Positions 1 to 23,747 of a stretch of DNA of 23,747 bases are shown piece after piece. The position numbers and the translations under genes were made by a program. This DNA comes from Geosiphon pyriformis uo1 (lineage: Eukaryota > Fungi > Glomeromycota): NCBI GenBank assembly GCA_016748015.1, contig JAAOMT010000755.1, forward strand, positions 86,946 to 110,692, given 5' to 3'. Under the pieces are notes generated by a model that had not been told where the DNA came from, searched no databases, and was given only the letters and a program-made list of their open reading frames with translations. The stretch's first letter is position 1. Every line of letters begins with the position of its first letter.

Positions 1-3000
1 TTAAAAGTTATTTTACAAGGCAAGCTATTTATTTGCTCAATCGAGATTTAAAAGAATATCAAACTTAGTCATTATATAATTTCTCCTAAAATCTCAAATT
101 CAATTGGACTCAAATGATATTTAATGATAATAATAAAACTATTGCATTTGAGAAATAATTTTTCCCAATTCCATAGCTTTCCCGCATAAAATCACTCAAG
201 TATCCCTAAAATTTATCATAGCAATATTTGTATAAAAGTCAAGGACTTTTTAAATCTTTAATTTACCATAAAAATATTCTGAATTAAAATTTTAAACTGT
301 TATTAAATTTAAATTTTATGTGTTTATATATATAGAAGATCCTTAATTTCAAAACTTAATTAAAAAATTATAATACTGTTCAAAAAATAGTCTTAATACT
401 CAGAAACTTATAAAAAATTATAAATTTTAATATATTTAATATTTAGTTTATATAATATTTTTTAATATTTGTTAAATAAATCTAAAAGATTTGCTTAACA
501 ATTTTGTATGTTTAAAATACTATTTCTTACTAATTAAATTAAAAATATATATTAATTGCAAAAATTAACAAACACCAAAAAAAGTGCTTACAAATATTAA
601 CTAAGGATGTTATCTAACAAAAAGAAATATGAATTTTACAAATTTATATTTATCTTTTGCTTAAAATTATAAGCCTAAATAATTGATTTTTTGATTTATT
701 TGCATTTATAAAAGTAATAATAAAAATATTATTCAAAAGTTTGTATATTATTAAGAGCATAAAATGTGCTAATAAAATTAACTATTATATAGTAAAGTAA
801 TTCAAAATATAACCAGTATTATTTTTTAGACAGTTTTTTTGTAAATTATCAAACAAAATTAACACTTCACTATTAAATCAATTTTTATTATAATTATTTT
901 TTAAAACTTTCAACATCCTCTGAACTTTTTGTACTGTTTTTTGAATTGCTTTAAATTTAACAAAATTATTAAAAACTTTCAATTAGTTCTAATTAAGCTA
1001 AAAATCCAAGAACATATTAATAAATTCAATAAAACTTTTTTTTATGTTACTGCTTTATTTTTTCTAGTATTTAAAGACATCTTTTCACAAAAAATTCAAA
1101 GTTTTTTTTCAAGTCTCCATATTTAGGTATTAAAAAACTCTTATAAAGTAGTGTACAAAGAGATCTAATAAACATTATAAAACAAGTAATATGTAAACAT
1201 ATCTATTTTTAGAATTCTAATGGTTTTATCTCTATAAACTTGGTTGGATTAGTTTTTTTTGTAAATCATAATAAGATAATACTTTTATGATAGATAGCAT
1301 ATAAAAATATATTGTAATTATAGAAATATATTTCCTTCTTTTAAGGCTTAGCAAAATTTTTTATATTGTTTAATATGTAAAAAAAAAACTTATCTAAAAT
1401 TTTTGCAACAAATATGCAATAGCTTGCTTAACAAATTTTACTTAAATGCTCAACTATAAATTCAAAACACTTGTGAGGATTAAAGATTTTATACCAAAAA
1501 TTAAAAATAAAGTCATTTTTGATTCTGTTAATAGCAATAAAAGTCGAGAGCTCTATAGCTTTCAAATGAAGTTTGTTGAAAGTACACATATGTACTCGTC
1601 TTATTTAATAAATTTATAATAAATAATGAAGAAAATTACACATAAAAACTTATTTAATTTTTATGTGTAAAAACAAATATATATTGAAAATTATTCAAAA
1701 TATTTTTTATATTTACATAAAAGCTAGAAAACAGATTTTTTAAAATATAAATACATTTGAATATAAATTTAATAGTGTATTTTGCCAAAACATGAACTTA
1801 TCCAAATAGTGTTAAGCATTGCTATTGATAAATTAATCTATAATTTGACAATGTAAAAATATTATAAAAATGATTTAAAAATATTTTATTTATGTTTTTA
1901 ACTTTCATTTTATTTTAATAAAAGCTCATATATTTGTATATATTTTTATTTTTTGTTAAATAAGATCTAAGCCTTAAAATTTTTTCTATATTTAAATAGT
2001 TTTTCTTTTTGTATAAAATTTATTTTAAATTATATTAACTATATATTAATTACTATTACATACTTTTACCACTTTATTTTTAGCATTAGTTATTACTATT
2101 TTTATTGATTTGATTTATAACTTGATTATAAACTTAGCTATTAATTATATTTTTACCTCAATTGTTAATTTAATTATTGACTAAACCATTGATTTAATTG
2201 TTAACTTGGCTATTTATTATTTTTAGAAAACATATAAATAAGACTTTTCAAAACTATAAAAAAGTATTTAACTATCTAAATATTAGCAATTTAATTTACT
2301 TTTATTAATATTATATTTGATTTGAGCATTAAAAAAATCACTTTTGCATAAATAAATAAAAATCCATAATTAATTGAAACGAAACTTAATTTAAAAGATT
2401 TAGATATTAGATTTTATATAACAATAAAACTCTCGTCTATTTGACCCAAAAATATCCTAAAATATATCAAAGTCATTTGAGGATCGATAACTCCCAAGTA
2501 ATAAATCAAGATTTTCACATATTTATGATAAAAATATATTGAATGACCAGACTGAACATGATTTTTAGCAAGTAGTTTTACTCATTGTTTTTTTTCAAAA
2601 ATGCTAAATTTTTCATTCATAGTTGATCAAATTAATACATTTTGATAGCAAAAGCAGAGAGTTTTTGTTTTACATAGTAAAAAAGTATATTAAGTATGCT
2701 CAATATTGCCTAAATTTTAATATTTAAATTCAAACTTGTGTAAAAAAGGTCTCAAGGATATTTAACCAGTTGTTTAAAAATAAACTTATTATTGCTTGGA
2801 CTTAAGCCAATATTAGCAATTCTTAAAGTTATTACTGAACTATTATCATTTAAAAATAGTTATATTAATTACAATAGTTTATTATACATTAGGTTTCTTA
2901 AATATTTTATATCGATCATTTCAAATTTCTGAATTAAATTTCAATAGGCTTAAACAATAAACAGTAAATAACAAGAATTTATTAAAATTAGCAATAGGTG

Positions 3001-3056
3001 AACAATTTTTTTATATAAACTAGATGGATATAGAAAAAGTAATTGACAAATGTGGC

Positions 3057-3171
3057 TACTTCTTTCTGTTCTTTACTCTTGTAAGAAATTTTAAACTAAA
3101 ACTACTCCCTCCCACTTTTCATTCTTGTAAGAAATCTTAAACTACCTCCCTCCTACTTTTTATTCTTGCAA
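3057..3171. repeat. Minisatellite, ~41-46 bp unit, ~2.7 copies
   Basis: The unit (a)ctactccctcccacttttcattcttgtaagaaatcttaa recurs three times with variation. Confidence 0.8.
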
Positions 3172-3278
3172 GGCATAAATAACAGATTATCAATTATCAA
3201 TTTTTTATCATCTAATTCTAAAATTTAATTTAGTTATTTAATAATTGATTGTTTATGAATTTCTATTTCGTATTCATT

Positions 3279-3727
3279 GGCTATTCAAATGTTGAATTGC
3301 GAATTACTGGTGAGTATGGTAATTCAAATATTGAGATACGAATTATTTGTGGATGATGATTATTTGAATGTTGAATTGCGAATTATTGGTGGGTCATGAT
3401 TATTTAAATGTTGAATTCATGCATTTTTGGTAAGTGGTAGTTATCGAATGTTGAGTTGAATTATTGGTGGGTAGTGGTTATATTTGAATGTTTAATTTGT
3501 GCATTTTTGATGACCAATAGTTATTTGAATGTTGAGTTGCAAAATATTGATGGATAGTTATATTTAAATGTTGAATCACAAATTATTGGTGGGTAATGGT
3601 TATTCAAATGTTGAATTTGTACATTTTTGGTGGGTGGTAGTTATTCAAATATTGAGTTGTGAATTATTAGTGGATGATGGTTATTCAAATTTTGAATTCA
3701 CAAATTATTGGTAAGCAGTAGTTATCT
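3279..3727. repeat. Minisatellite, ~40 bp unit, ~11 copies
   Basis: Consensus is about ggttattcaaatgttgaattgcgaattattggtgggtagt, with units of ~37-43 bp. A 'catttttg' variant occurs in units 4, 6 and 9. Confidence 0.92.
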
Positions 3728-3854
3728 AACAATTGTTGGTATCAAATTAGAGTCAAGCTTAATAGAATTTTTTTTTTCTACCAACTTTGCCAAACCTGTT
3801 TTGTTGACTGTAGTTTTACTAAATAGTAGATAAGAATAGTTTAATTCATAATAC

Positions 3855-4113
3855 ACATCAATAATTATAAATGAAAACAGACATTTAGCTAGAATGCAGC
3901 AAACACAAAGATTAAATAACAATTCATATCATTGATCATAAGTGGAAGCAGATATTCAACAGAATAAGCATATGCAAAAAGATATAACAATTCATGTTAT
4001 TAACTATCTATAGAAGTAGACATTTAGCAGAATGAGTACATATACAGAGGTACAACAATTCATGTCATAGACCATAAGTGAAAACAGACATTTGGCAGAA
4101 TGGGTGCATGTAT
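3855..4113. repeat. Minisatellite, 68 bp unit, ~3.7 copies
   Basis: AACAATTCAT occurs at 3918, 3986 and 4054. AGA(C/T)ATT occurs at 3879, 3950, 4018 and 4086. A period of 68 is not a multiple of 3, so it is unlikely to be coding. Confidence 0.88.
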
Positions 4114-6039
4114 AATAGTTAAAAAACACCACATTTGGTAATATAAAAGAGTTGAAAACCCCATGCTTGGTTAAGTTTCTTTGGTTAAGATTAGAGTTTT
4201 TTCTAGTAAAAAATGTCTTCCTTTTTCACTCAATACTTAAAGCTAAAAAGGATATATTAATACTCCTATCTGAATTGTTTTATTAACTAAAGATTTTTAA
4301 TTTTTAAGACCTGCTGTGGTTATTGATATAACTGGACACAAAAATAAACCTCTTAAATATTTTTAGTGTTCTTTGAATTCATGAGTTGTTAGTCATACTG
4401 GTTATAGCTGTTGGATTTATAAGTTGGTAAATGCCAGTAATTTGTTGCTAATAAAGATAAGAGTAATTTTATATAGAATAAAATTTTGTTTAAAGACAAA
4501 AAACACCTCTTTATATGTTACTATCTTTAAGTTGTTGATTTTGAAATCAAAAATTACACATTTGTTTTTCATGCAAAAACAAAAATACAAAAGTGGGTTA
4601 ACTAATATGTAGTAATTAAAAACAAAGTGTCACTTTTTGAAACTTTGGTACTTTCTGAAAAATTTTTAAATTATTATGCAGATTCTCATAACTCATGTAA
4701 TATTAAGCAAATTTTTATAACTCATTTTTTTGACTCTGTTATCTTAAAATGGCTAAATATAATCAGTATGAAAATCAAATTTACATTCTCCTTAAAACTG
4801 TAGGATTCATTATAATGTTTAATTTAACTTTTCTTTTTGTCTAAAAAAACAATATAAATGGTCGCAGATGAATTAGTTATTAAAAACATATCTTATATCC
4901 GAAAAAAAAATTAATATACTAGACTGAATAATATAAAAAAAATGGAAAACCACTAAATATAGCCAATATAAGTACTCTCTGTTGTAACATAGGATCTGAA
5001 AACATGACTGTTTACTTAAAACACAGCCTCCAAAACATTCAAAAAATTTCAAAACAAGTTTAATGTTCATTATTATCATATCTCGATCAAAATTACAATA
5101 ACAGTTTAGTTTCAGCATTAAATACTAAAAAAATTAGGAATTTGGCAATAGACAACAAATAACAAAGAATTGAAAAAGTATTGACAATAATAAATAATTA
5201 AATATTTAATTTAAAGACCTGAATAAAATCAAGCACATTATTTTAAATTAATTCTATTCTATGGAAGCATATTTCTGCTTTAATTTACATAATGAAAAGT
5301 TCAAATGTCAGTAAATATTTATATTTTTAGATGGGTGATTAATTTAATTTACTTAATTTAATCTACTTAAACAGATTTACTGGGTGATTGATTTATTATA
5401 CTTAAACAGACTAATTTTTCAAAAAGTTCTTGGTTAATTTTACAAGAGATTATTAAAGATAATTAGACTTAATAGAAATTTTTTTATATTATTTCTATTA
5501 GCTTAAAAAAAAGACATAGATCAGAATAGTAATGTATTTAAAGTACTATTTTCCGAAATCTAATACCTAATAGCCAGATAAAAACCAAAAGATATGAATT
5601 GGAGCTTTTATTAGATGAGTTAATAAAAAGATTAAGTAAAATTGAAAATATTCAGAAAATTCAAAATAATCTATAATATTCATGGTATTTATTACTAAAA
5701 ATTAATTATATAAACATTAATTATTTCCAGAATATACTATTTTGCAATATTATAACTTAACATTTTTAATATACCTGAACTATTAAAACAAATTTTACAT
5801 TTTTTAGCAAAAAATAAATTACTTTACCCAACTCTTTTCATTAATAAACTTTAATAATATTCTTTTGTTTTAATTCTATGATAACATATTAAGTTTTTCA
5901 TAGATCATCGGAACCAATTTAATAAAAAAATGTCTTAAGTTTTTACTTGGCAGTTAATAAACTTTAAAAGAGTTATGTGTAGAATAATAAAGCTATTCAA
6001 TTGCTTCAAGATAGTATATTTTTGATTAGAAGATTTAAA

Positions 6040-7430
6040 AAATTTCAGATGCATTGATCAGTGCAATTCTGTGTTTATGCCCAGATATACACTTTCTTAT
6101 ATTTGATGTTTATTCACAAATTTTAGCAGCAAAATCACCATATTTTGTCATAATGCTCTTTAAAAATTGGGTTAAAAAAGTAAATAATACCATTATCTTT
6201 GCTAAACCTAATATTTTTCTTAATATTTTTGAATTAATTATCAGGTAAGGTTTTCTTTTACTTCAAAGTATTTAACAAACATCAATTTTTATGTTTTATT
6301 TTTTTGTAAATACATTTATAATGGTGAGATCTCTTTTGATAAACATAGAATACCTATTATTTTAGAATTGCTTATTGCCATTAACAAACTTATTCTAGAA
6401 AATCTTATTGATTATCTTGAAGACTATTTAATTGAACACTATACAAAAAAGTTAGAAGAGAATTTTGCCACTTTATAGAAAACTTCATTATGCACCAAAA
6501 TAGCTGCTAACAATCCAGCTATAGTCTTCAACTCACAAGATTTCATCTTCCTTAGTGAAAATGCTTTTTCTTTAGTTTTAACTCGAAATAACTTAAATAT
6601 AGAAGAATCTAAGATCTGGGAAAAGATTGTGAAATGAGAAGTTGCTAAATTAGATAACAATATTTAGTTGAAAAAAGTTTTACTGGACAGATGAAAACTT
6701 TAATGCTTTTAAGAAATCTATTGAAATGCTTTTACCTTTAATATGCTTTAATATATCTTCAGTTAACTACTATCACAGAGTAAAACCATTTGTGAGAATC
6801 TTACTTGGAACTCTATATGAAGATCTTTTACATTATTATCTTATACTGAGTAGTCATCAAAAGTCTATAGACACTTAGTATTATGATTAAATATTAAAGC
6901 TTTTTCAATCACATAATATAAAACAGATAGATCATTGGATTCAAGACAAAGACAAAAATACTATTTTTGGAGATTAAGTTGAAAATAATTTTAAATTGTT
7001 ACTTCAAAGCAGTTGAAATGGATTTACTCTAGCTGATTTTCATCGATTATGCGATGGTAAAAAAGCAACAGTTAGCGTAATCAAAGTAAAAGGAACTGAT
7101 TAGCTAATTGGTGGCTATAACTCACACTCGTGGTATTCTAAGGATGAATTTTTGAAGGGAAAAGGAAGTTTTATTTTTTTCCTTAGAGATGGCAAAGCTG
7201 GAAATGCTCAACTTGGCAAATTTGTTGACAAATTTGGACCTTATGGTGGGCTAGACTATGGGCTCATGTTTGAAATGAATTTTATATTACATGGCAATGA
7301 TTTTTAAAATAGTTTAGGGTGGTATTGTGCAAATAAAAGAAACTATAAGCATGTTGTAATGTCTGGGTCAGAAGATCACGGGGATTTCTTTGTCAAGGAG
7401 TATGAGGTTTTTTAAATCATAAAAAAATAA
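6040..7430 (+). pseudogene. BTB/POZ-BACK-TLDc protein pseudogene, copy A (more degraded; 5' boundary approximate)
   Basis: BTB segment reads VYSQILAAKSPYF..IIFAKPNI..IFELIIR/YIYNGEI. Intron at 6245-6309 has a GT donor but the acceptor has mutated to AA. BACK-like segment reads VFNSQDF..NLNIEESKIWEKIVK. TLDc segment reads NFKLLLQSS..DFHRLCD..IKVKGT..IGGYN..EYEVF. There are many stops and frameshifts, and it is collinear with 10195-11645 (-). Confidence 0.9.
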
Positions 7431-8719
7431 AATTGGTTTTATTTAATTTGATATATATTTTTCAAAAGTTATGCACCCTATTCTGGAAATTTCCATCAAC
7501 AGAATATTCTATATCTTACTGCTTTAAGACGCAAAATAAATTTAAAAAACGATAACAAGTTTTAGAAAAAACTTTAAAATTTATAATTATTTTAATAAAA
7601 AGTAATTGTTAAAGTGAAGGTTTTTATCATAGGCTAAAACCAAAAAATGCTCGTTAGCACTCTTATTCCCGTGGAACGCCTCATAAATAATATAATCTAC
7701 TTTCAATCTACTTATCAATTCAAAAGAAATGCTATTTAAGCTTTATAATCTTTATTATGGCAAGCAATAGTATGTTTTTGTGTTTAAAGACTGCTCGAAT
7801 TTTACATGTGTAAAGGTAATTCCCATATTATACAAACTCCCAATTTTCAATACATGATTCACCAAATGTTATGAATTCAATTTAGGATTTGAGACTTAAT
7901 AGAAAAATAATTAATTAATTCAGGATTTTTAAGGTGGCATAGATTATTGTGTGAATTTGAGAAAAAGATTTTATTGAATTTTGATGGTCAAATAAAAAAT
8001 TTTAAGAAAATCTAGTTCGATACAAACTGGTCCCAGATTCATATCTAATAGCTCAATATTTCGAATATCAGTTAGCTTAATGGCTTGTAAAATTAAATAT
8101 ATCATTCTAAAAAAAGTGTTTTTGTATCTTTCCAAAAATTATTTTATAGACTTTCACCTCTTTGGTATATTGATATTCGAAAGTTAGCTTCCGAGTCTAT
8201 TGATTTTTCATGAACCATAAAATTATTTTGAATCTGATCACTTTTATCGCAACTTTAATAGAAAAGTTTTTTCGATAACCTAAAAACCTTCTAATAATGC
8301 ATTAACGAAATTTGATAGATTTTACCATATCATATTTCAAACAATAAGATTTTATTGCATACCATGCATATTTTTGAAAAATCTTTTGTGTATTATCTAT
8401 GACTCTGTCTACTTTCTGAGAAAATATAATTTTCCAGTCTAACATATTTTATCATGTTTAATATGAGAGAATCTATGAGATTTTCAATATATTTCAATAA
8501 AATTGTAAAATTTCTTAAGATATTTGGAGTTTCTGTGATTGTTTTCGGGTCTCGAAGGGTACAAATATGAAAGAGAAAATTAGGCTCTGTGAAGATTTAT
8601 ATAAAATTTGATACTAAAAGCTTCTTCAAAAATATGTCTTGTATGGGAAATTAGCCTATTCTTTAGAAAATTCATTATAGATATGCTAATATATAAATAT
8701 CATTAATCGCAAAGATTTT

Positions 8720-9297: not shown

Positions 9298-10194
9298 TTT
9301 CATAAAAGAATAAAGTAAATTGAATGTGTAAGAAACATATTTTAATGTGATCAGTTTTAAAATCACAGTTCCTAATACTTTCAGAAATATTTAAAAGTAA
9401 AGAAATAGTTTGTTATAATTCTATGTCTTGATTAATGCTCTTAAAATTTAATAGCAGGTCTAAAACTTAAAAAGACATGAAATTTTACAGCTTTATTTTA
9501 ATTTATAAATACCAATTTTAAAAAATTTGTAAAATAATAAGACAAAAATTTTTTAAAATAAAAATTTTTGAAGCCAAATATAAAAATTTGATATTTGTAA
9601 TTTATCATAATATTGATAGAATGCATATAATTTTTTTTATAAGTTATTTATTACTTGAATGATTGATATTATAAATTTTTAGTAGTCATTTAAATCTTAG
9701 ACATTTAATAAAAAAGCATCAACATTTAAGAATTTAATTTTTTGCTAGAATTTTATTCTTTTGTCGTCATTATCAATGAATATTAAATTTCTCATTTCTG
9801 ATTTTCACTTTAGTTTAAAATTCTATATATTACATAGCTACCAACTATAATCAAGCAAAAACTATGCATTTCAAGGCTATACCTAAAATAAGTTTTATTT
9901 CTAATGCTTTTTACCTAATTCTAAGCAATTGTGGAAATTCGAAAATTCTACAATTTTTACCTACAATAAAATATATCACAAAGCTAAAAGAGCGTTTGTT
10001 TGAATAAATTTATGTAAATAATGCTTTATCTTGTTTAAAGCTCTCTGAAATTTCTTTTAAAAAAAGACATTCTCAAATAATATCTACTGAGAATGTAGTG
10101 ACTATAAAATTTCATGAAATAATATTTAATAAAAATTCATGTTAGATTTAATAAAAAATATGAAACTTAATTCGATTAAATAATAAAACTAAAT

Positions 10195-11645
10195 TTATCT
10201 TTTTCTGATTTGAAAAACTTCATAGTCCTCGGAAGAGAAATTCACCATTTGATCTTCCGATCCAGGCATTATAGCATGCTCATAATCTGTTGTCTTTTAA
10301 CAAGAGCACCATGAATCACTTTTAAAGTTGCCAATCAGCCGAATATTGTCATTTCCAAAAGAGGGCTTATGATTTGGCCCATCATAAGGTCCATATCTGC
10401 TAGCACATTTGCTAAGTTTAGCATTTCCAGCTTTGCCAGCTCCAAGGGAAAAAATAAAGCTTCCTTTTCCCCCCAAAAATTCATCCCTAGTATGCCACAA
10501 TTGTGGATTATAGCCACCAATTAGCTGACCAGTTCCTTTCACTTTGATTAAGGTAACTGTTGCTCCTTTATCATCGCATAATCGATGAAAATCGGCTGGA
10601 GTGAATCCGTCTCGACTGCTTTGAAGTAACAATTTAAAATTATTTTCAACTTAATCTCCAAAAAGAGTATTTTTGTCTTTGTCTTGAATCCAATGATCTA
10701 TCTGTTTTATATTATGTGATTGAAGAAGCTTTGAATCAATATTTAATCATAATGGCTGAGTGTCTACAGACTTTTGATGACTACTCGGTATGAGATAATG
10801 ATGTAAAAGATCTTCATATAGAGTTCCAAGTAAGATTCTCACAAATGGTTTTACTTTGTGATAGAAGTCAACTGAAGATATGTTAAAGAACCGGATTAAA
10901 GGTAGAAGTCTTTCAATGGATTCTTTAAAGGCGTGGAAGTTTTCATCTGTCCAGTAAAGAACGTTCTTCGTCTGAATATTGTTATCCAATTTAGCAACTC
11001 CCCATTCAACAATTTTTTCCCATATTTCAGATTCTTCTATATTTAGGTCATCCCGAGTTAAAATTAAGGAAAGAGCATTTTCAGTAAGGGAGGTAAAATC
11101 TTCTGAGTTGAAGACTATAGCTGAAAGAATCATGCATAAATGAAGTTTTCTGCAAAATGGCGAAATTTTTTTCAAGCTCTTTTGCATGATGTTTAATCAA
11201 ATAGTCTTCAAGGTGATCAATAAGATTCTCTAGAATAAGTTCGTCAGCAGTAAGAAGCAATTCTAAAACGGTAGATACTTTATGTTTATCAAGAGAAATC
11301 TCGCCATTATAAATATATCTGTGCGGGAAAATAAAACATAGGAATTTGTGTTGGCAAAAATACTTTAAAGCAAATGAAAACCTTTACATCAGAATTATCT
11401 CAAAAATTTTGGGTGAAATATTAGGTTTAGCGAAAATAATAGCATTATTTTCTCTTTTAATCCCATTACTAGAAAGTGCTACAGCAAAAATATGGAGATC
11501 GTGCTGCTAAAATTGGTAAATGAGCGTAAAAAGTTCTAATATTAGGCACTTCTTCAATAACAATTCTAACATCAGAAAAATTCTGGCTATCCAGTATATT
11601 TCCAAAATCATCGGACAAAGCCTGAGAGAATTGCTGGGGTGCCAT
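10195..11645 (-). pseudogene. BTB/POZ-BACK-TLDc protein pseudogene, copy B (full length)
   Basis: ATG at 11645 gives MAPQQFSQALSDDFGNILDSQNFSDVRIV..FYAHLPILAARSPYF. Lesions: +1 frameshift ~11487, deletion/frameshift ~11125, stops at 10747-49 (TGA), 10651-53 (TAA) and 10297-99 (TAA). Intron 11387-11319 is GT..CAG. TLDc reads SRDGFTPADFHRLCDDKGATVTLIKVKGTGQLIGGYNP..DYEVFQ, with the natural stop at 10195-97. Confidence 0.93.
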
Positions 11646-11729
11646 TGATAAAAGGTATAAAAGCTTTGAAATATTGATATTTCAATCTGCAGTCTTTAAG
11701 GCATTTTTACAGCACTGAGTTTTACACTG

Positions 11730-13627: not shown

Positions 13628-16127
13628 ATGTCTTCCACTTTGCCAATTGAAATTACAATTTCATCTCCCAACTGTCTTAAAGGAGCTTTCAGTGTTATTA
13701 AAGAAATTCTAGCCATTTTTCCAAAAAAATGTCTTAAGCGCAATCAAAAAAAATGAGGGAAAAGCTTTTAAACGCTATTTCAAAGCAGCAAAGGCAGGAG
13801 ATTTAAATGCACAATACAATCTTGGATAGTGTTATGCTAATAGAGAAGGAACGACCAAAAATTTAGAAGAATCATTTGAACTCTTTTCGAAAGCAGCAAA
13901 GGCTGGACATTTAAATTCAACATTCAATCTTGGATAGTGTTATGCTAATGGAGAAGGAACGACAAAAAATTCAAAAAAAGGATTTGAACTCTATTCAAAT
14001 GCAGCAGAGGGGGGAGATTTAGATGCACAATGCAATCATTCACTTTGTTATTTAAATGGAGAAGGAATGACAGAAAATTCAGAAAAAGCATTTGAACTCT
14101 ATTCAAAAGCAGCAGAGACGGGACATTTAAGTGCACAATACAATCTTGCATTTTGCTACGATAATAGAAGAGGAATGACAAAAAATTCCAAAAATGCGTT
14201 TGAACTCTATTCAAAAGCAGCAGAGAGGGGAGATTTAAATGCACAATGCAATCTTGCACTTTTTATTTAAATGGAGAAGGGACGACAAAAAATTTAGAAA
14301 AAGCATTTAAACTCTTTTCAGAAGCAGCAGAGGTGGGACATTTAGTTGGAGGAGTAGGTGTTAGAGCATATCAATTGGAAACAGCGGAAAATCTGGGAAA
14401 AGGGGAAAATTCGAGATCACAAACCAGTATTGGCACGTATTATTGAAATGGAATAGTGAAGAATTTAGAAGAAATATTTCAATTTTATTCAAGAGCAGTA
14501 GAGGCAGGAAATTAAAATGCACAATATAACCTTGGATGGTGTTATCAAAATGGATGGGGAACCACAAAAATTTAAAAAAAGCATTTGAACTGTATTTAAA
14601 AGCAGCAGAAGCAAATAACTTATGTTATCAAAGTGATTTTTTTGATTTGCATGTCCATGACCTTACTTTAAAAGAACAAGAAAATTTGGAATATACCATT
14701 TTACAATTCCGAAAGCTAGACTTCAAATACCTAGATTATTTGAAAGGAGAATTTTTAGATTTTGAAGCTTTCTTTGACCAGCTTTCAGATGAATTTAAGT
14801 GTCTTAAATGTGGCAACTTGGGTACAATCATTAGTGGATCTCCTATATGTCCATTTTGCGATACTGATAAAAGGGATAATATTAGGTTGCCGAAATGCCT
14901 AGAGTGCGATGGAACATTAAAAAATTCACTTTGGTGTAAATCTTGTAAATATCTACGATTGTTAAAAAGTTGCGGAACATGGAACAGTGGAAACGATAAT
15001 ATTGATCAGTATATAAATCATACACAAAAGATTTCTGAAAGCTGCGGGGGATTTTTGGAATGGATTTCTCCTGACGAGATCACATTTTTAGATAGGGTGG
15101 GAACAGGGGGATTTGGTATTGTTAAAGAAGGTAGATAGGAGAGAGGCAGAATTCTATTTTGGGATAAGAAAAATCAAAAATATGAACGAACTGGGGTTAC
15201 TAAAGTTGCTTTAAAATGTCTTAAAGGCAACCAAAATATGGAATGTATCAATTCAGATAAGGTATTTTCTTTTAAGTAATCTATGTAATTTTTATTATCC
15301 CTATTTTTTCTCTAACACCAAAAAATGCATTAAAATAGTTTCTTGTGCATCTTACAAGTGCATCTTGCAAATATATCCTTGAATGCTATGGAATAACCAA
15401 AGATGTTACAAATAATGAATTTGTTATGGTTTTACCATTTGCGGAACATGGGGACCTCAAAGCTTTTCTTAAGTCAAACAAAGATATTCTCACTTAGGAC
15501 ATGTTTCTTCGTATTCTTTTTCAAATCGCTGGTGGCCTAAGATTTATACATGAATCAAAACTGGTGCATGGGGACTTGCATCCTGAAAATATCCTTGCTT
15601 TGAAAACAACACCCTTAAAAGTTGTCATTTCTGATCTTGGACTCTGTCATCCTGCAGATGACACTCCACAGTTTGGAAAAATTTATGGTGTTCTTGAGTA
15701 TCTTGCACCAAAAATTTTCGAGGAGGATTCTCATACTAAGTATAGCAATATATACTGCTTTGCTATCATTTAATGTGAAATTATATCGGGAGAAAGACCT
15801 TTTAATAATACAGATCCTATCAACGTGGTACATAATGTGATTAAGGGAAAGCGTCCTACAATCAAGAAACATACACCTCAATGTATTCAGGAAATAATTA
15901 AAAAAAATTGGCATTGTAATCCGCAATACCGTAACACTGCAGAACAACTTCAACAAAGAGTTATTGCTGCTCATTATAACTGTAACTTAAATGAACTTGT
16001 CTATGAGAAAAGATTTTATTCTGAAGAGATAAAAGATGCTCAACATGATGAAACAAGATATAAAAGTCAACATATCTCAAACTTTACATGTTCAATGAGT
16101 GGTGAGACTTTCATTTATAATATTTAA
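13628..16127 (+). pseudogene. Sel1-repeat / CxxC / tyrosine-kinase-like protein kinase pseudogene
   Basis: ATG at 13628, then ~8 Sel1 repeats, four CxxC motifs (CLKC, CPFC, CLEC, CKSC) and a WNSGNDNID..LEWI linker. Kinase motifs are GTGGFG, VALK, HGDLHPENIL, DLG, GVLEYLAPK and GERPF. Intron 15262-15338 has GT, a CTAAC branch site and AG. Stops at 13827, 13935, 14444, ~14512, 15136, 15495 and 15771; frameshifts at ~13750, ~14262 and ~14568. Small 3' exons beyond 16102 are possible. Confidence 0.92.
13760..14610 (+). repeat. 108-bp Sel1-coding tandem array
   Basis: (K/N/E)AA codons start at 13782, 13890, 13998, 14106, 14214 and 14321 (period 108, one 1-bp loss). An irregular unit and further units follow to ~14610. 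Confidence 0.93.
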
Positions 16128-18704: not shown

Positions 18705-19402
18705 TTGCTTACTTCTTTAAAAACATTTTTGAACTGTTTTTTATAAATTTTATTGCTACTTCGGTTTATTTTCTCTTTTATATTTCATTAAACCATCAAA
18801 CATGATTATTTTATATATTATACTGAATCTTTTTCTATTAATTTTGTTGATATTTAACAAATGCTTGTATGAAATAGTAATATGTTTAAGATAATATGAA
18901 TTAATAAACATCAAAAAAAAATTATGTGATTAAATAGTATATGTATAAATAATATTTATTTTATGTTATATAAAATACATCAAGGCCTAATTACTAATAT
19001 AAATCAGAAAACAAAAATTGGTCTTTTTAAACTTGCAAATAATAACAGTTTTTGTTTTTTTTAGAAGATGTTTATACTTTATTTTGGGTGGAACATAGCA
19101 TTCAACTATGTTATAAAAGACATTTTACAAAAAAAAAAGTGGATTAAAAGAAAAATCGAAATTTATTTTATTAATATATATCTTATAATTAGAATATATA
19201 TTCTTCGTAAAATTCAATTTTAAATACAGATTTGTGAACTGGTCTTGCCTGACAGAAGGCCTTGAAATTGGTTAAACAGATGAAATTAACTGAGCTTTAA
19301 TTCTTGTCTTAGACTGGTTAAATAATAAGTTATACATGTATCCAAATAAAAAAAAGTTATTTATATAATATATAACATACTTTATTAAAGCTATTGTCAG
19401 AT

Positions 19403-19429
19403 TTATTATTATTATTATTATTATTATTA
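19403..19429. repeat. (TTA)9 microsatellite
   Basis: Perfect trinucleotide run, read directly. Confidence 0.95.
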
Positions 19430-19985
19430 GACTTATTTAAAACTGGGTTTGCTTTGGCTTTTAAAATTTTGTTTTTTTTTAGTTGAATAATATGTGATAA
19501 AATTTCTACTATAAGTTTTTCATTTTTGAAAATTGATTATTTGGAATTAATTTTGACTTGAATATTATATTAGAATTTAAGAAAAAAAATAAAGAGAACA
19601 AATAATAGCAAAGAAGAAAATAATGACAAAAAAGTTAAATAGTGGCAAAAAGAAGAAATAATAATGAGAAGAAATAGTAGTAAAAAAAAAATAGGGCAAA
19701 AAGAAAAAATAATAGTGAAAAGAACAAATAGTAATAAAAAAAATGAAAAAAAAACAAATAATAGAGAAAATAACATTAATAATAAAATTATTCAAGTCAT
19801 AATAAAGTTATTATCTCTTTCCATATGTATGATAATAACAAAATGATATATCCAAATTATTACTATTTACATGAACAATAAAGTCATTGCTTTTTTTATA
19901 TAATATAAATTATGAAATAATCAAAATTATATTCTTTTATTTTGTTAAAATTAGGGCTTAAATATTAATTCAAACTATTTAAAAT

Positions 19986-22408
19986 AAGACTAAGCAAATT
20001 TTTTGTGCTTGTGCAAAATATCAGAAAAATGATATAAAAAACTTAAGATATTAATTACAAAATTCACAAAAATTAGACATCACAAAAGAAAACATAAACA
20101 AAACAACTTGGATTTAAAAAGTTGCTTAAGTTTGAGTGTTTTTGATATTGAAGAAAGTTCAGACAATAATTCTGAAATTTTAATTATTGGGTATGTTTAT
20201 ATAAAGTCTATTTTTATTTCTTTAACATATTTTAACATTAAGTACAATAATTCAAAGATCTAAAAATTGTATTATAAATAAAAATTGTATGAACATAATC
20301 GATAAAAGTCATTTGGAAAGTGGTTATTTTAACATAGAGTCTGAATTGATTTCAAATTCTGAAATTATGAATTATTCAAATATTAAGCACAAATTGTCTT
20401 TGAATTCTCAAATTATTAATTATTTGAATATTAAGCACAAATTGTTTTCGAATTCTGGAATTAATGATTCAATTGACTCAGACAAATTATCTGATAATAT
20501 TTTTGATATGAAAATTTGGTATTTACAGTTACTTAAAAAATTTCTTATTCTTTTATCTTAAAACTAATTTGATAATTCCATTTATATTAGATATTAAATA
20601 AGAAAGAAAATTATTTAGTAAATTGGCTTGTATACTTAGATTATTCAAGGTTAAGTTTTGTTTTAACAAATTATGATAGCAGTTAATAATAATGTTTTTA
20701 ATCTATATTAAGCAAAAAAGATAGTATTTATAAAACCAATATAAGTTGATATTTATATTAAATTCTGTTATACATATACTAAAAAGTACAAAAATTATAA
20801 TGAATATAATATCTGTTAGATACCAAAATTCTGAGAAAAAAAACGTGTTTCTTAATGTCAAATAGCTTATTTCTCTATCAAAGATCATTTTTGAATTTAG
20901 TATCAAGATTCAAAACACTCCGAAATCATAAGATATTGTACACAATTAAAGATAAATTTGATGATATAAAATACAAAAAACTTGTGTCTAAAAGCTTTTT
21001 TTAAGATAATTAAAATATGGTATTGACAAGTTTTATTGATAATTATTAAATATTTCGACAAAAAACAGACAATTACTAGATAGTTTTAATAATCAATGCC
21101 AATATTTGTCTATAGAATATGTCGAAAAAAAATTTAATAATAACAACTATTATGTCTAGTTCAAAGAAATCTAAGAATTTTAATTCAAAAATATTTCTTA
21201 AAAAATTGAAAAAGTTAAAAAATAATATTCTAAATATCTTATTTAACAGACTATTAATTATATATATTAATTTTATTATTTAATATGTATCTAGTTAGAA
21301 TTGACTGCTATGATGGATTTAAAAAAAAGTCTTTTTTGTAACATGTTTATGTCTTATTATAGTTAAGTAATATGCTTGGTTTAAAAAAATTAATGTGTTT
21401 TATAAAATTTATACAAATAATGTTATTTTTGTAATATCTATGAACTTTATACAAATTATATATATTTTGTAATATTATTATCTATTAAAAAAAAGAATTA
21501 GTATCAAACATATGATCTAGATAATTTACTTTTGCAAATTTATAAATAATTTAAAAATTAAATCTTTCAAATAAAAACAGCCAGTTCAGAAAAAAACAAA
21601 AGAGAATTAATATTAGAATTTAGTATGTTTTTATTATTAATGTTTTACATTAATTGTTTTTATTAATATTTATTTTTTTTATAATAATAATAATAAAAAA
21701 TCAAAGTATATTATTTTATTTGAAAGTAATCTATTTTTCAGATTTTTTTAATTAATATAATGTATCTTATTTATAAAAACATTGCTGAATACATGTTTAA
21801 ACATTAAACAGATAATTTTTTTCAAAAAAAAAGTGGTTAGAATAATAAAAATTATGTATTCAACAAAAATACATGGAAAGAAATAAAAGTTGAAATAAGT
21901 TATTATTGAACAATACTGCCTATTTTATTTAGATAATTTTTACATAATATTGTTTTTTATTATAATAAATATAAGACTAAAGAATAGGTTTTATGAATCA
22001 CAATATATTTTTTGCCTTTTTTAAAAAGCAAATTTTACAAAGACACTATAAAAAATAAACAACTTTTATTAAAGCTGTATGCTTGTGTCAAAAGTTAATA
22101 TTAACTGCACAAGATATAGATTATATTTAATTATTATTTGGTTTTTTATAACTTATAAAAGGTAAATAAATACTTATTGCTTTATTAATTTAATATAAAG
22201 TATTTACAAAAGTAATTAATTTTTTTTACAAATATTATTACTGTAATCAAGAGAAATAATATAATACAATAAAATTATGTTTTCATAATTTTTTATATAT
22301 TGTAGATAGTATTAAAAAAACTGGTCTATGTTGAACCACTTAGCATTTTCTTATGGAATAAATATGTAAAATGCTTGTTTTTTTAGTCTAATCATATTTT
22401 TATTTATA
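19986..22408 (+). mobile_element. Hypermutated CACTA/EnSpm (CMC; tnp2/Transposase_21 plus DUF4218-like) transposase relic, interrupted by a Tc1 insertion
   Basis: Decayed motifs occur in family order: FCACAK..TKIRHHK; PI*VDIYIKFCYTYT (cf. PIWxDMCINSCCAFT); QIAYFSIKDHF*I*YQD; SFIDNY*IFRQKTDNY*IVLIINANI at ~21030-21105 (cf. GSxDGYQIFRQKTDDCWxVxxINAN); MSSSKKSKNFNS (cf. PGPKEPKDFNS); SNMLGLKKLMC; CYFCNI; INIMYL/FYKNIA (cf. IDIMHLFYENIA); YKTKE*VL*ITIYFLP (cf. YKAEEWxxWITxYSLP); FIKAVCLCQK; TGLC*TT*HFLME*ICKML (cf. TGPCWxTWQFPMERxCGML). Confidence 0.88.
20355..20466 (+). repeat. In-frame 48-bp tandem repeat (~2.3 copies) in the CACTA N-terminal low-complexity region
   Basis: AATTCT occurs at 20355, 20403 and 20451, translating as NSEIMNYSNIKHKLSL / NSQIINYLNIKHKLFS / NSGIN. 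Confidence 0.85.
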
Positions 22409-22518
22409 CAGAGGGTGTCCAAAAGTTTCCGAACAAACTTTGGAGTAACATTCCACATGCTTGAATAATTAGGAAAGCACGAGTTTATTACTAAATTAAG
22501 TTAGTTAATTATTTAATA

Positions 22519-22621
22519 ACGCGTTTTTTATTTTTTAAACACGCGTGTATAATGTTTTTTCGCGACGCGCATAATCGATTTTATTCATACTCGTTTTTTT
22601 ATAAAAATGAAATGTAACGCG
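22519..22621 (+). promoter_or_regulatory. Cluster of MCB/SCB-like boxes upstream of the Tc1 transposase
   Basis: ACGCGT at 22519 and 22541; TTTCGCG (reverse complement of CGCGAAA) at 22558; ACGCG at 22565 and 22617. Function is inferred only. Confidence 0.45.
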
Positions 22622-22657
22622 CATATAAGATTTTTTCGTCGTTTTTATTAAAACGAA

Positions 22658-23683
22658 ATGGGAGCAAAAAAAGAATTAACGATTGCTTAACGTAATACTA
22701 TATGCTTATTACAACAGTATGGCAAGAAATATCGTGATATTGCCAACATAGTCAATTGCAGCTTGACAACAGTTTTGGATACAATAAAACGATTTAAAGA
22801 AACTGGTTCAATTGATTCAAGGACGTCCACGTTTATTTACTCACCAAAAATATCGCCGAATTAACGTTTAGTAACACTTAATGGAAAAAATCGTCGTTTA
22901 TGTATTGCAAATATACGAACTCTTTGGAAACGAAAAACAAAGCAAACTATTTCTCTTAGAACTCTTCGGCGTGCTCTTAAATTGGTTGGATTACGAAATC
23001 GTTATGCAAGAAGGAAACCTTTAATCTCACCAGCAAATGTAGCAGCACGTCTTGCTTGGTGTATTAAACATCAAAATTGGACAAATCGAAAATGGGCAAG
23101 AGTATTATGGAGTGACGAATCAACTTTCTCTCAATTTCAACACAATCGGTCTAGTAAAGTATGGCGTGAACCATCTGAAGAATGGCAATTGTCTTGTGTA
23201 TCAGCAACAGTCAAACATAGTCCAAGTCGAATGTATTGGGCTTGTTTTTCACGACAAAACATTGGACCAATTGTACCATTATATCAAACGGTAAATGGTA
23301 CTAGACATGTTGAAATTCTTAACCATTATGCCTTACCAACTTTACAACGCATGTTTCCTAAAAACAATGGATGGTTTCAAGAAGATAATGCTACCCCTCA
23401 TCGATCAAAAACTGCCAAAGAATTTCATAGCAAAAACAAGTTACGTATTCTTTCTTGGCCTCCTCAAAGTCCAGATCTCAATCCAATTGAAAATTTATGG
23501 GCTATAGTAAAATGTAATATTCGTAAAAAAGAAAAACCGCCAACTACTCTTAAAAAACTTGATAAGTATGTTAAAGAAGCTTGGAAAGCAATTCCTAAAT
23601 CAACGATTATAAAATTAGTTGATAGTATGCCTCGACGTATTCAAGCAGTAATTATAGCACAAGGAGGACCAACAAAGTATTAA
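22658..23683 (+). pseudogene. Tc1 transposase, DD34E; N-terminal HTH region disrupted, catalytic domain open
   Basis: ATG at 22658 gives MGAKKELTIA*RNTI..YRDIANIVNCSLTTV, with TAA at 22688 and 22862. The GRPR motif (22821) is in a shifted frame between compensating frameshifts. Catalytic region reads WSDES, FQEDNATPH, SPDLNPIENLW (34 residues between D and E) and ends GGPTKY. Confidence 0.93.
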
Positions 23684-23747
23684 AAGCTTAATAGAAAATT
23701 TAGAAAATTACTATAAAATTATAAATATGTTGTTTATTTTGTTTTAT

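Follow-up and report, generated by a model that had tools for sequence, protein, structure and literature searches.

Copy-specific C>T hypermutation with a RIP-like outcome in transposons of Geosiphon pyriformis

Results and Discussion

The 23,747-nucleotide stretch of the Geosiphon pyriformis genome analysed here (G000:C614:86946-110692, hereafter the window, from an assembly of 128.3 Mb in 792 contigs) holds at positions 18885-22410 what its sequence identifies as a truncated copy of a DNA transposon of the tnp2/CACTA superfamily. The reading frame of this copy was destroyed mainly by copy-specific C>T hypermutation acting on both strands, and not by age (C>T is used throughout for the change on either strand, that is, C>T/G>A). 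The same process struck half of the long Tc1/mariner elements that we sampled, one duplicated segment, and one pseudogene of a gene family, and spared copies of equal age, short derivatives, and working genes. It resembles RIP (repeat-induced point mutation), by which moulds defend their genomes, and had not been recorded in Glomeromycotina. The terms 'RIP-like' and 'repeat-targeted' describe this outcome and not a demonstrated mechanism.

Loss of cytosines in the transposon family

The GC content of the window is 16-21% in non-coding DNA and about 32-34% in genes, and the portion on which the original prediction was made, 19986-22408, has 17.9% GC and 6 CpG and lies inside the wider repeat 18885-22410. 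Three further copies of the family, on contigs C702, C589, and C635, extend to about 5.5 kb, and a partial fifth copy was found on contig C477. The window copy and these three longer copies share a mutual DNA identity of 77-83%, with 77-80% between the window copy and the other three and 79% for C589. About 1.1 kb that the full-length copies carry at the left (5') end is missing from the window copy, which is truncated at its right, at position 22410, by a mariner insertion. The window copy showed 0 differences from contigs of a public run that probably derives from the same sample, and is therefore not an assembly artefact.

To polarise the changes, ancestral states in this CACTA-like family were inferred with G/C given priority at transition columns. 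There were 2289 columns with a base in all four copies, of which 562 were C/T or A/G mixtures, about 76 included a transversion, and 121 were an invariant G or C. Pairwise transition/transversion ratios (Ti/Tv) among the four copies ranged from 6.5 to 12.5, and G:C>A:T exceeded G:C>T:A by about 30-45 to 1. Private transversions amounted to 0.5-1.0% per site in each copy; C702 and C589 had equal transversion loads but differed 2.5-fold in their C>T loads. When cytosines detectable in at least one copy were sorted by context, the proportion lost was 20-46% in C589, 38-54% in the window copy, 30-56% in C635, and 51-75% in C702. The three possible 2:2 splits occurred 84, 72, and 52 times, and retention of G/C tracked the overall retention of each copy and defined no tree. 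From such homoplasy we infer that each copy lost G:C independently after descent from a shared ancestor whose GC content was 32% or more.

Within 19986-22408 the window copy showed 324 G:C>A:T changes against 24 others, of which 40 of the 324 (12%) were at ancestral CpG, and in the CACTA-like copies as a group 86-88% of C>T events fell outside CpG. The original prediction had held that C>T/G>A hypermutation in a broad sequence context erased a gene here, and with 88% of the changes in this portion outside CpG that part of it was borne out. The same figure rules out a spectrum confined to CpG, which the prediction had named beforehand as an outcome that would speak against it.

The mariner family as a natural experiment

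The mariner that cuts the window copy belongs to a family whose ancestor is known from many near-identical copies, so the family serves as a natural experiment. The window mariner itself was essentially unmutated, with 4 C>T at 439 G:C sites and a CpG observed/expected ratio of 1.97, even though it directly adjoins the erased transposon. Six long mariners, by contrast, carried C>T and all other changes in the proportions 106/5, 145/3, 120/5, 52/7, 40/3, and 29/8, and had lost 7-43% of their G:C pairs, and six other long mariners carried 1-9 C>T and 0-8 other changes. The load of changes other than C>T was equal in the two groups, and across mariners of equal background divergence the loss of G:C ran from 1% to 43%. 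As in RIP, the changes were almost only C>T, making up 79-98% of those in the mutated mariners and 324 against 24 in the erased transposase region.

Mutated sites common to the six affected mariners were as frequent as expected by chance, and these copies were therefore mutated independently; a hypermutated subfamily derived from one mutated ancestor was also considered and is ruled out, with shared sites at chance level. Among 23 short derivatives of about 540 bp, the private changes were C>T 7, C>A 10, C>G 4, T>C 10, T>A 7, and T>G 3, so that C>T accounted for 7 of 41 in what is an ordinary spectrum (Fisher p about 1e-17). The family (window 22411-23747; loci L025-L053) is young, with copies reaching 98% identity, and may be active today. 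It includes at least 30 non-autonomous derivatives of about 540 bp, which consist of positions 1-479 joined to 1277-1337.

Sequence preference of the changes

In lightly mutated mariners, 18-25% of CpG was lost against 1-8% of other cytosines, and in heavily mutated ones about 60% against 31-47%. For the two heaviest copies, the losses were 61% of CpG and 37% of non-CpG cytosines, with other substitutions together affecting 0.3-0.6% of sites. The odds ratios for CpG versus non-CpG in the two families were 3.4 and 2.2, and those for non-CpG cytosines after T or C versus after A or G were 2.3 and 2.0 (p=1e-9 and p=2e-24). The CACTA-like and mariner families thus have one signature in common, in which CpG is struck first and then C after T or C, on both strands. 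Although most of the events fall outside CpG, the prediction's implication that CpG is not a favoured target did not hold, since per site it is preferred and in lightly mutated copies it is struck 5-10 times more often.

The context counts showed no CHG preference of the kind associated with plant chromomethylases, and in neither family did they show the CpA preference of classical RIP. The RIP composite index of the four CACTA-like copies ranged from -0.05 to -0.62, where classical RIP needs a value above 0, along with a high TpA/ApT and a low (CpA+TpG)/(ApC+GpT); a scan that relied on the index would score these copies as 'no RIP'. C>T and G>A were about equally frequent and interleaved along the copies (strand-split heterogeneity p=0.36; runs-test z -0.3 to -2.3). 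Strand-coordinated editing was considered as a source of the changes and rejected, as the strand split was uniform among copies and the changes interleaved.

Which copies are struck

The mutation of mariners depended on length, with 0/23 of the short (540-bp) copies struck against 6/12 of those of at least 770 bp (p=6e-4). Under RIP, all duplicated DNA above a threshold of length and identity would be struck and unique DNA left alone; the sparing of short copies fits a length threshold, but four full-length mariners that are 97-98% identical and have the same background divergence were untouched, and homology alone is therefore not sufficient. With these four and at least 23 short copies untouched, the description of the process as repeat-targeted, which the original prediction had offered, could not be upheld as it stood. 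Among the long mariners, a heavy load went together with flanks poor in CpG (Spearman -0.64, p=0.035). The trigger may be homology above a certain length, silent chromatin in the neighbourhood, a rare episode such as a sexual one, or several of these acting together.

Gene paralogues and other duplicated DNA

Based on Pfam matches, the window carries genes of the BTB/BACK/TLDc and Sel1-like families, the former with more than 40 genomic paralogues at 79-88% identity. Gene paralogues at 77-80% identity to each other had Ti/Tv of 0.9-2.4. A stop-ridden BTB/BACK/TLDc copy (6102-7581) lies within a CpG-depleted block at 1-7000 and had a moderate excess of C>T, whereas its inverted, intact-looking paralogue nearby (10182-11646) is in CpG-normal DNA and had none (Table 1); a second intact-looking BTB/TLDc copy showed 29 C>T against 96 other changes. 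A duplicated segment of about 3.4 kb (G000:C635 ~79650-82670 versus L030:331-3736), which includes a mutated mariner, was 87-90% identical with Ti/Tv of 15-20, so whole nested blocks appear to have been hypermutated together. A second outcome that had been named beforehand as adverse, the same spectrum in the background as in the repeats, is ruled out by the 1-43% range among mariners, by the short derivatives, and by the gene paralogues, comparators which are nevertheless not truly unique neutral DNA.

Identity of the erased transposon

The window copy is beyond protein-level detection: its own open frames in this region had no match in Pfam, and a tblastn search of the window with a full-length relative, a 915-residue protein of Calcarisporiella thermophila (P0031), returned none either. 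Its assignment was made through the least damaged copy, C589, which has 24% GC and still gives protein matches. P0031 carries Transposase_21 (PF02992) at 8e-22 and a weak DUF4218, and was collinear with C589 in tblastn at residues 169-435 (1e-40), 476-630 (9e-17), 621-761, and 811-903, the third E-value listed for this comparison being 1e-12. Through the DNA alignment of the four copies, window 20706-22410 was matched to P0031 from residue 169 to about residue 680, and the C-terminal portion of the transposase, about 235 residues, is absent from the window. The piece of C589 at the position of the 21152-21187 motif (L017:663-845:-) matched PF02992 at E=2.5e-4, a fragment below the cut-off. A search of the whole genome with PF02992 gave no match, which is not evidence of absence, given that it also missed C589 remnants detectable by Pfam or tblastn.

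At the protein level, the element's best relatives belong to Rhizophagus irregularis and Scutellospora calospora, which, like the BTB/BACK/TLDc and Sel1-like genes of the window, points to Glomeromycotina. An open frame of 101 residues at the 3' end of C589 had no match in Pfam but 76 relatives in a large protein library, mostly Rhizophagus and Scutellospora fragments but also P0031, and this C-terminal region is common to glomeromycete and Calcarisporiella proteins.

The claim that the AT-rich stretch is a decayed transposase was thus upheld, by way of the 79% DNA identity to C589 and the collinearity of C589 with a PF02992-bearing protein, and the codons at 21152-21187 are exactly as had been claimed. 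For this motif the window reads MSSSKKSKNFNS, C589 ISVSKKPKDFNS, C635 IFGSKKPKNFNL (which keeps G), and P0031 VPGPRLPKDFNS. Six C>T/G>A reversions had been proposed here to restore the ancestral motif; three of them (S from G, S from P, and N from D) are present in sister copies, and the other three occur in no copy and are matched by P0031 only. Elsewhere, the proposed change of DGYQ to DNY* agrees with the paralogue alignment, in which the window has DNY* and C589 NGYQ, and the changes of W to stop, R to stop, and C to Y were likewise found against paralogues, together with Q to stop.

The element resembles En/Spm (CACTA) transposons in its collinear Transposase_21 core and in the remnants of a PGPK.PKDFNS motif. 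It differs from them at its ends: the full-length copies on C702, C589, and C635 are bounded by a 12-bp inverted repeat, AGTAAAAAAAAG ... CTTTTTTTTACT, where neither terminal inverted repeats starting with CACTA/G nor any clear 3-bp target-site duplication was found, and the window copy is without both ends. The terminal sequences of the full-length copies may have been altered by C>T decay. The CACTA label of the original prediction therefore stands for the tnp2 transposase, as seen through C589 and P0031, and not for the termini, and the superfamily name is taken from the transposase.

Cytosine methyltransferases and published reports

The C5-methyltransferase domain gave ten exon-level matches in the genome, on six contigs, several of them with stop codons that represent either introns or wrecks. 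Searches of the genome with APOBEC_N (PF08210) and OTT_1508 (PF14441) gave no match, both weak negatives in that the same search missed the tnp2 remnants. For the clade of arbuscular mycorrhizal fungi (AMF), methyltransferases of the DNMT1, DNMT2, DNMT5, DIM-2, and RID types have been reported (PMC8298701), so such a toolkit is not foreign to the group. In R. irregularis, 32-49% of cytosines are methylated (PMC8298701) and transposons bear CG methylation (PMC8647823). RIP signatures have been stated to be undetected in AMF, a group with no known sexual stage (PMC8647823), a survey of transposons in 24 AMF genomes makes no mention of RIP (PMC11952901), and our literature search found no published report of such hypermutation in Glomeromycotina. 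In Neurospora, DIM-2 is reported to be capable of causing C>T mutation by way of a heterochromatin-related pathway (bioRxiv 10.1101/115501).

Possible mechanisms

We give a probability of roughly 0.5 to the explanation that the mutator is a cytosine methyltransferase working with the silencing machinery, with deamination linked to both, a proposal made by analogy with known systems. A copy would first be marked as silent chromatin, and a C5-methyltransferase of the DNMT1, DIM-2, or RID kind would then methylate or attack its cytosines. These cytosines would be deaminated to T some 100 times or more as fast as other substitutions occur, and deamination would continue until the copy was AT-rich junk. 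The outcome would be RIP-like and nearest to the DIM-2/heterochromatin branch, with a different sequence preference and an incomplete recognition of repeats.

Several points weigh against this explanation. The known enzymes that favour a 5' pyrimidine are typically AID/APOBEC deaminases and not methyltransferases, and the link to an enzyme comes from analogy and from a study of a different genus. CpG-depleted DNA surrounds ten of 18 short derivatives, the mariner L031, and the window mariner, all of which were spared, and such a neighbourhood is therefore not sufficient for a copy to be struck. In the polarised counts, cytosines lost in all four CACTA-like copies are invisible and T>C is merely bounded from above, and the sample is a small one of two families, one duplicated segment, and one pseudogene in about 226 kb.

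The first part of the proposed sequence, dense methylation of silenced copies, might be enough by itself if spontaneous deamination of 5-methylcytosine (5mC) and poor T:G repair did the rest with no dedicated mutator. Such passive decay fits the early loss of CpG in lightly mutated copies, the CG-methylated transposons (PMC8647823) and very high total 5mC (PMC8298701) of R. irregularis, and the single weak exon match to the UDG family in the genome. We nevertheless regard it as rather unlikely in view of the effect size, since in the heaviest copies cytosine loss exceeds other substitutions by a ratio of about 100 or more, and of the division of equal-age copies into heavily struck and unstruck. 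The mammalian CpG effect, set against that ratio, is about 10-15-fold. Simple AT-biased neutral drift of an old dead element is scarcely credible: it agrees with the non-coding DNA of the window, whose GC content is like that of the decayed copy, and with the loss of G:C expected of dead sequence at 32% GC, but transversion divergence is at most 1%, the C>T load does not follow that of the other changes, the background spectrum of short mariners and gene paralogues is not dominated by C>T, and the excess of G:C>A:T over G:C>T:A is far from what drift would leave.

Canonical RIP, with homology recognised above a length/identity threshold in premeiotic nuclei by a RID-type enzyme and made patchy by rare sexual episodes, would account for changes that consist almost entirely of C>T, affect both strands and are copy-specific, for the contrast between short and long copies when many of the short ones are in depleted DNA, and for the gene-family pseudogene, and the AMF clade is reported to have a RID type (PMC8298701). 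We consider it unlikely because of the four untouched full-length mariners of the same background age, the lack of a CpA preference with a composite index at or below 0 in all copies, the persistence as genes of the more than 40 BTB/TLDc paralogues, and the absence of a known sexual stage in the group (PMC8647823). Editing of transposon DNA by a cytosine deaminase, from the AID/APOBEC or a different family, would explain why, in two unrelated families, non-CpG C after T or C is struck about twice as often as C after A or G. The interleaved C>T/G>A with their uniform strand split are unlike editing of single-stranded intermediates, however, and with CpG as the strongest target and the two deaminase families giving no genome match in a search of limited sensitivity, this alternative seems quite improbable.

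Comparison with known systems

The process is like RIP in Neurospora and other Pezizomycotina in that the changes are near-pure C>T/G>A, on both strands and specific to each copy, and leave AT-rich, stop-filled transposon relics, and also in that it reaches duplicates other than transposons, here a gene-family pseudogene, with the heavy loads in silent, CpG-depleted surroundings. It is unlike RIP in favouring CpG and then C after T or C, and not CpA, in its negative indices, in sparing many near-identical repeats, and in occurring outside Dikarya, in a lineage for which no sexual stage is known and where the enzyme is for now a candidate class. There may be a likeness to the Dim2 effect in Zymoseptoria tritici, an ascomycete, in which Dim2 reportedly increases the rate of C>T mutation in repeats, so that repeats gain extra, methyltransferase-dependent mutations (PMC8016269).

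Hypermutation of transposons at TpCpG/CpG is reportedly found in Microbotryum, where it is said to have been described by Hood et al. in 2005, and in Pucciniomycotina and other basidiomycetes; these basidiomycetes are not known to have RID or DIM-2. Our copies are similar in their CpG-centred targets with a 5' T preference, but they differ in the massive loss outside CpG (31-47% in heavily mutated copies) and in that ACG is struck as often as TCG. The mutation studied in Z. tritici is reportedly mitotic, with a bias to CpA. Among early-diverging fungi, an index-based RIP signal and methyltransferases with a RID-like domain layout have been described in Zoophthora radicans and other Entomophthorales (PMC11105155). 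That claim and ours are alike in placing RIP-like mutation outside Dikarya; the evidence there is a composite dinucleotide index, whereas our evidence comes from polarised per-copy spectra, with an index that is negative.

Tentatively, and with somewhat less confidence than we place in the enzyme class, Glomeromycotina may have an active defence in which enzyme-driven C>T hypermutation with a signature of its own, run by the reported RID- or DIM-2-type methyltransferases, destroys the longer transposon copies. If so, a RIP-type defence would date back to the divergence of Mucoromycota and Dikarya or earlier, or would have been invented independently a second time, and if the process were also premeiotic, its footprints would record cryptic sex in Glomeromycotina. 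The absence of earlier RIP reports may reflect method, as the classical indices are tuned to CpA>TpA and are negative here, while a polarised per-copy spectrum reveals that as many as about half of all cytosines are gone. Were the process general, it would account for much of the very AT-rich, repeat-derived DNA of the genome, and transposon 'ages' based on Kimura distance would be badly inflated, copies appearing 16-23% diverged with transversions at or below 1%. It would also suggest a concrete, testable function for the cytosine methyltransferases of the clade, whose reported set is unusually complete, and would bear on the long-standing question of sex in these fungi.

Other observations in the window

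Table 1. Coordinates of the features discussed (window positions unless a contig is given)
Feature	Location	Strand	Remarks
Decayed tnp2/CACTA-superfamily DNA transposon copy	18885..22410	+	GC ~18%; DNA identity to C702, C589, C635
Transposase_21 (tnp2) core remnant	20706..21489	+	P0031 residues 169-435; tblastn P0031-C589, four-copy alignment
PGPK.PKDFNS motif remnant	21152..21187	+	Reads MSSSKKSKNFNS; codon view, paralogues, P0031
Transposase remnant	21693..22156	+	P0031 residues 476-630; tblastn P0031-C589 E=9e-17, mapped coordinates
Start of region of P0031 residues 621-761 (weak DUF4218)	22218..22410	+	Mariner cuts at ~residue 680
Tc1/mariner, 1337 bp, open 233-aa DDE_3 frame	22411..23747	+	Pfam DDE_3 6.9e-15, HTH_Tnp_Tc3_2
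Stop-ridden BTB/BACK/TLDc copy	6102..7581	+	84 C>T vs 44 other (three-way polarised comparison)
Intact-looking BTB/BACK/TLDc paralogue, 3 kb away	10182..11646	-	Pfam BACK, TLDc; 22 C>T vs 62 other
Ends of full-length C702 copy	G000:C702:2076816 and 2082360		Equivalent ends in C589, C635
C5-methyltransferase matches	G000:C657:788280-789372, 820713-821336; C702:1327528-1327926; C371:423510-423692		Exon-level
C5-methyltransferase matches	G000:C666:681025-681548; C646:684535-685894; C692:422414-422635		Exon-level

The Sel1-like gene at 13750-14609 contains internal 108-bp tandem repeats with Ti/Tv of about 0.9. A Sel1-like paralogue (L033:42-1497, 2610-3395) is interrupted by a hypermutated mariner at the equivalent of window 15372/15373 and has lost G/C relative to the window gene. 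Finally, a partly tandem repeat at 2857-4001 was compared with L050:3-1387, and the window copy showed a loss of G/C of about 5:1 (16/85, 20/108); like the BTB pseudogene, this repeat is located in the CpG-depleted block 1-7000.

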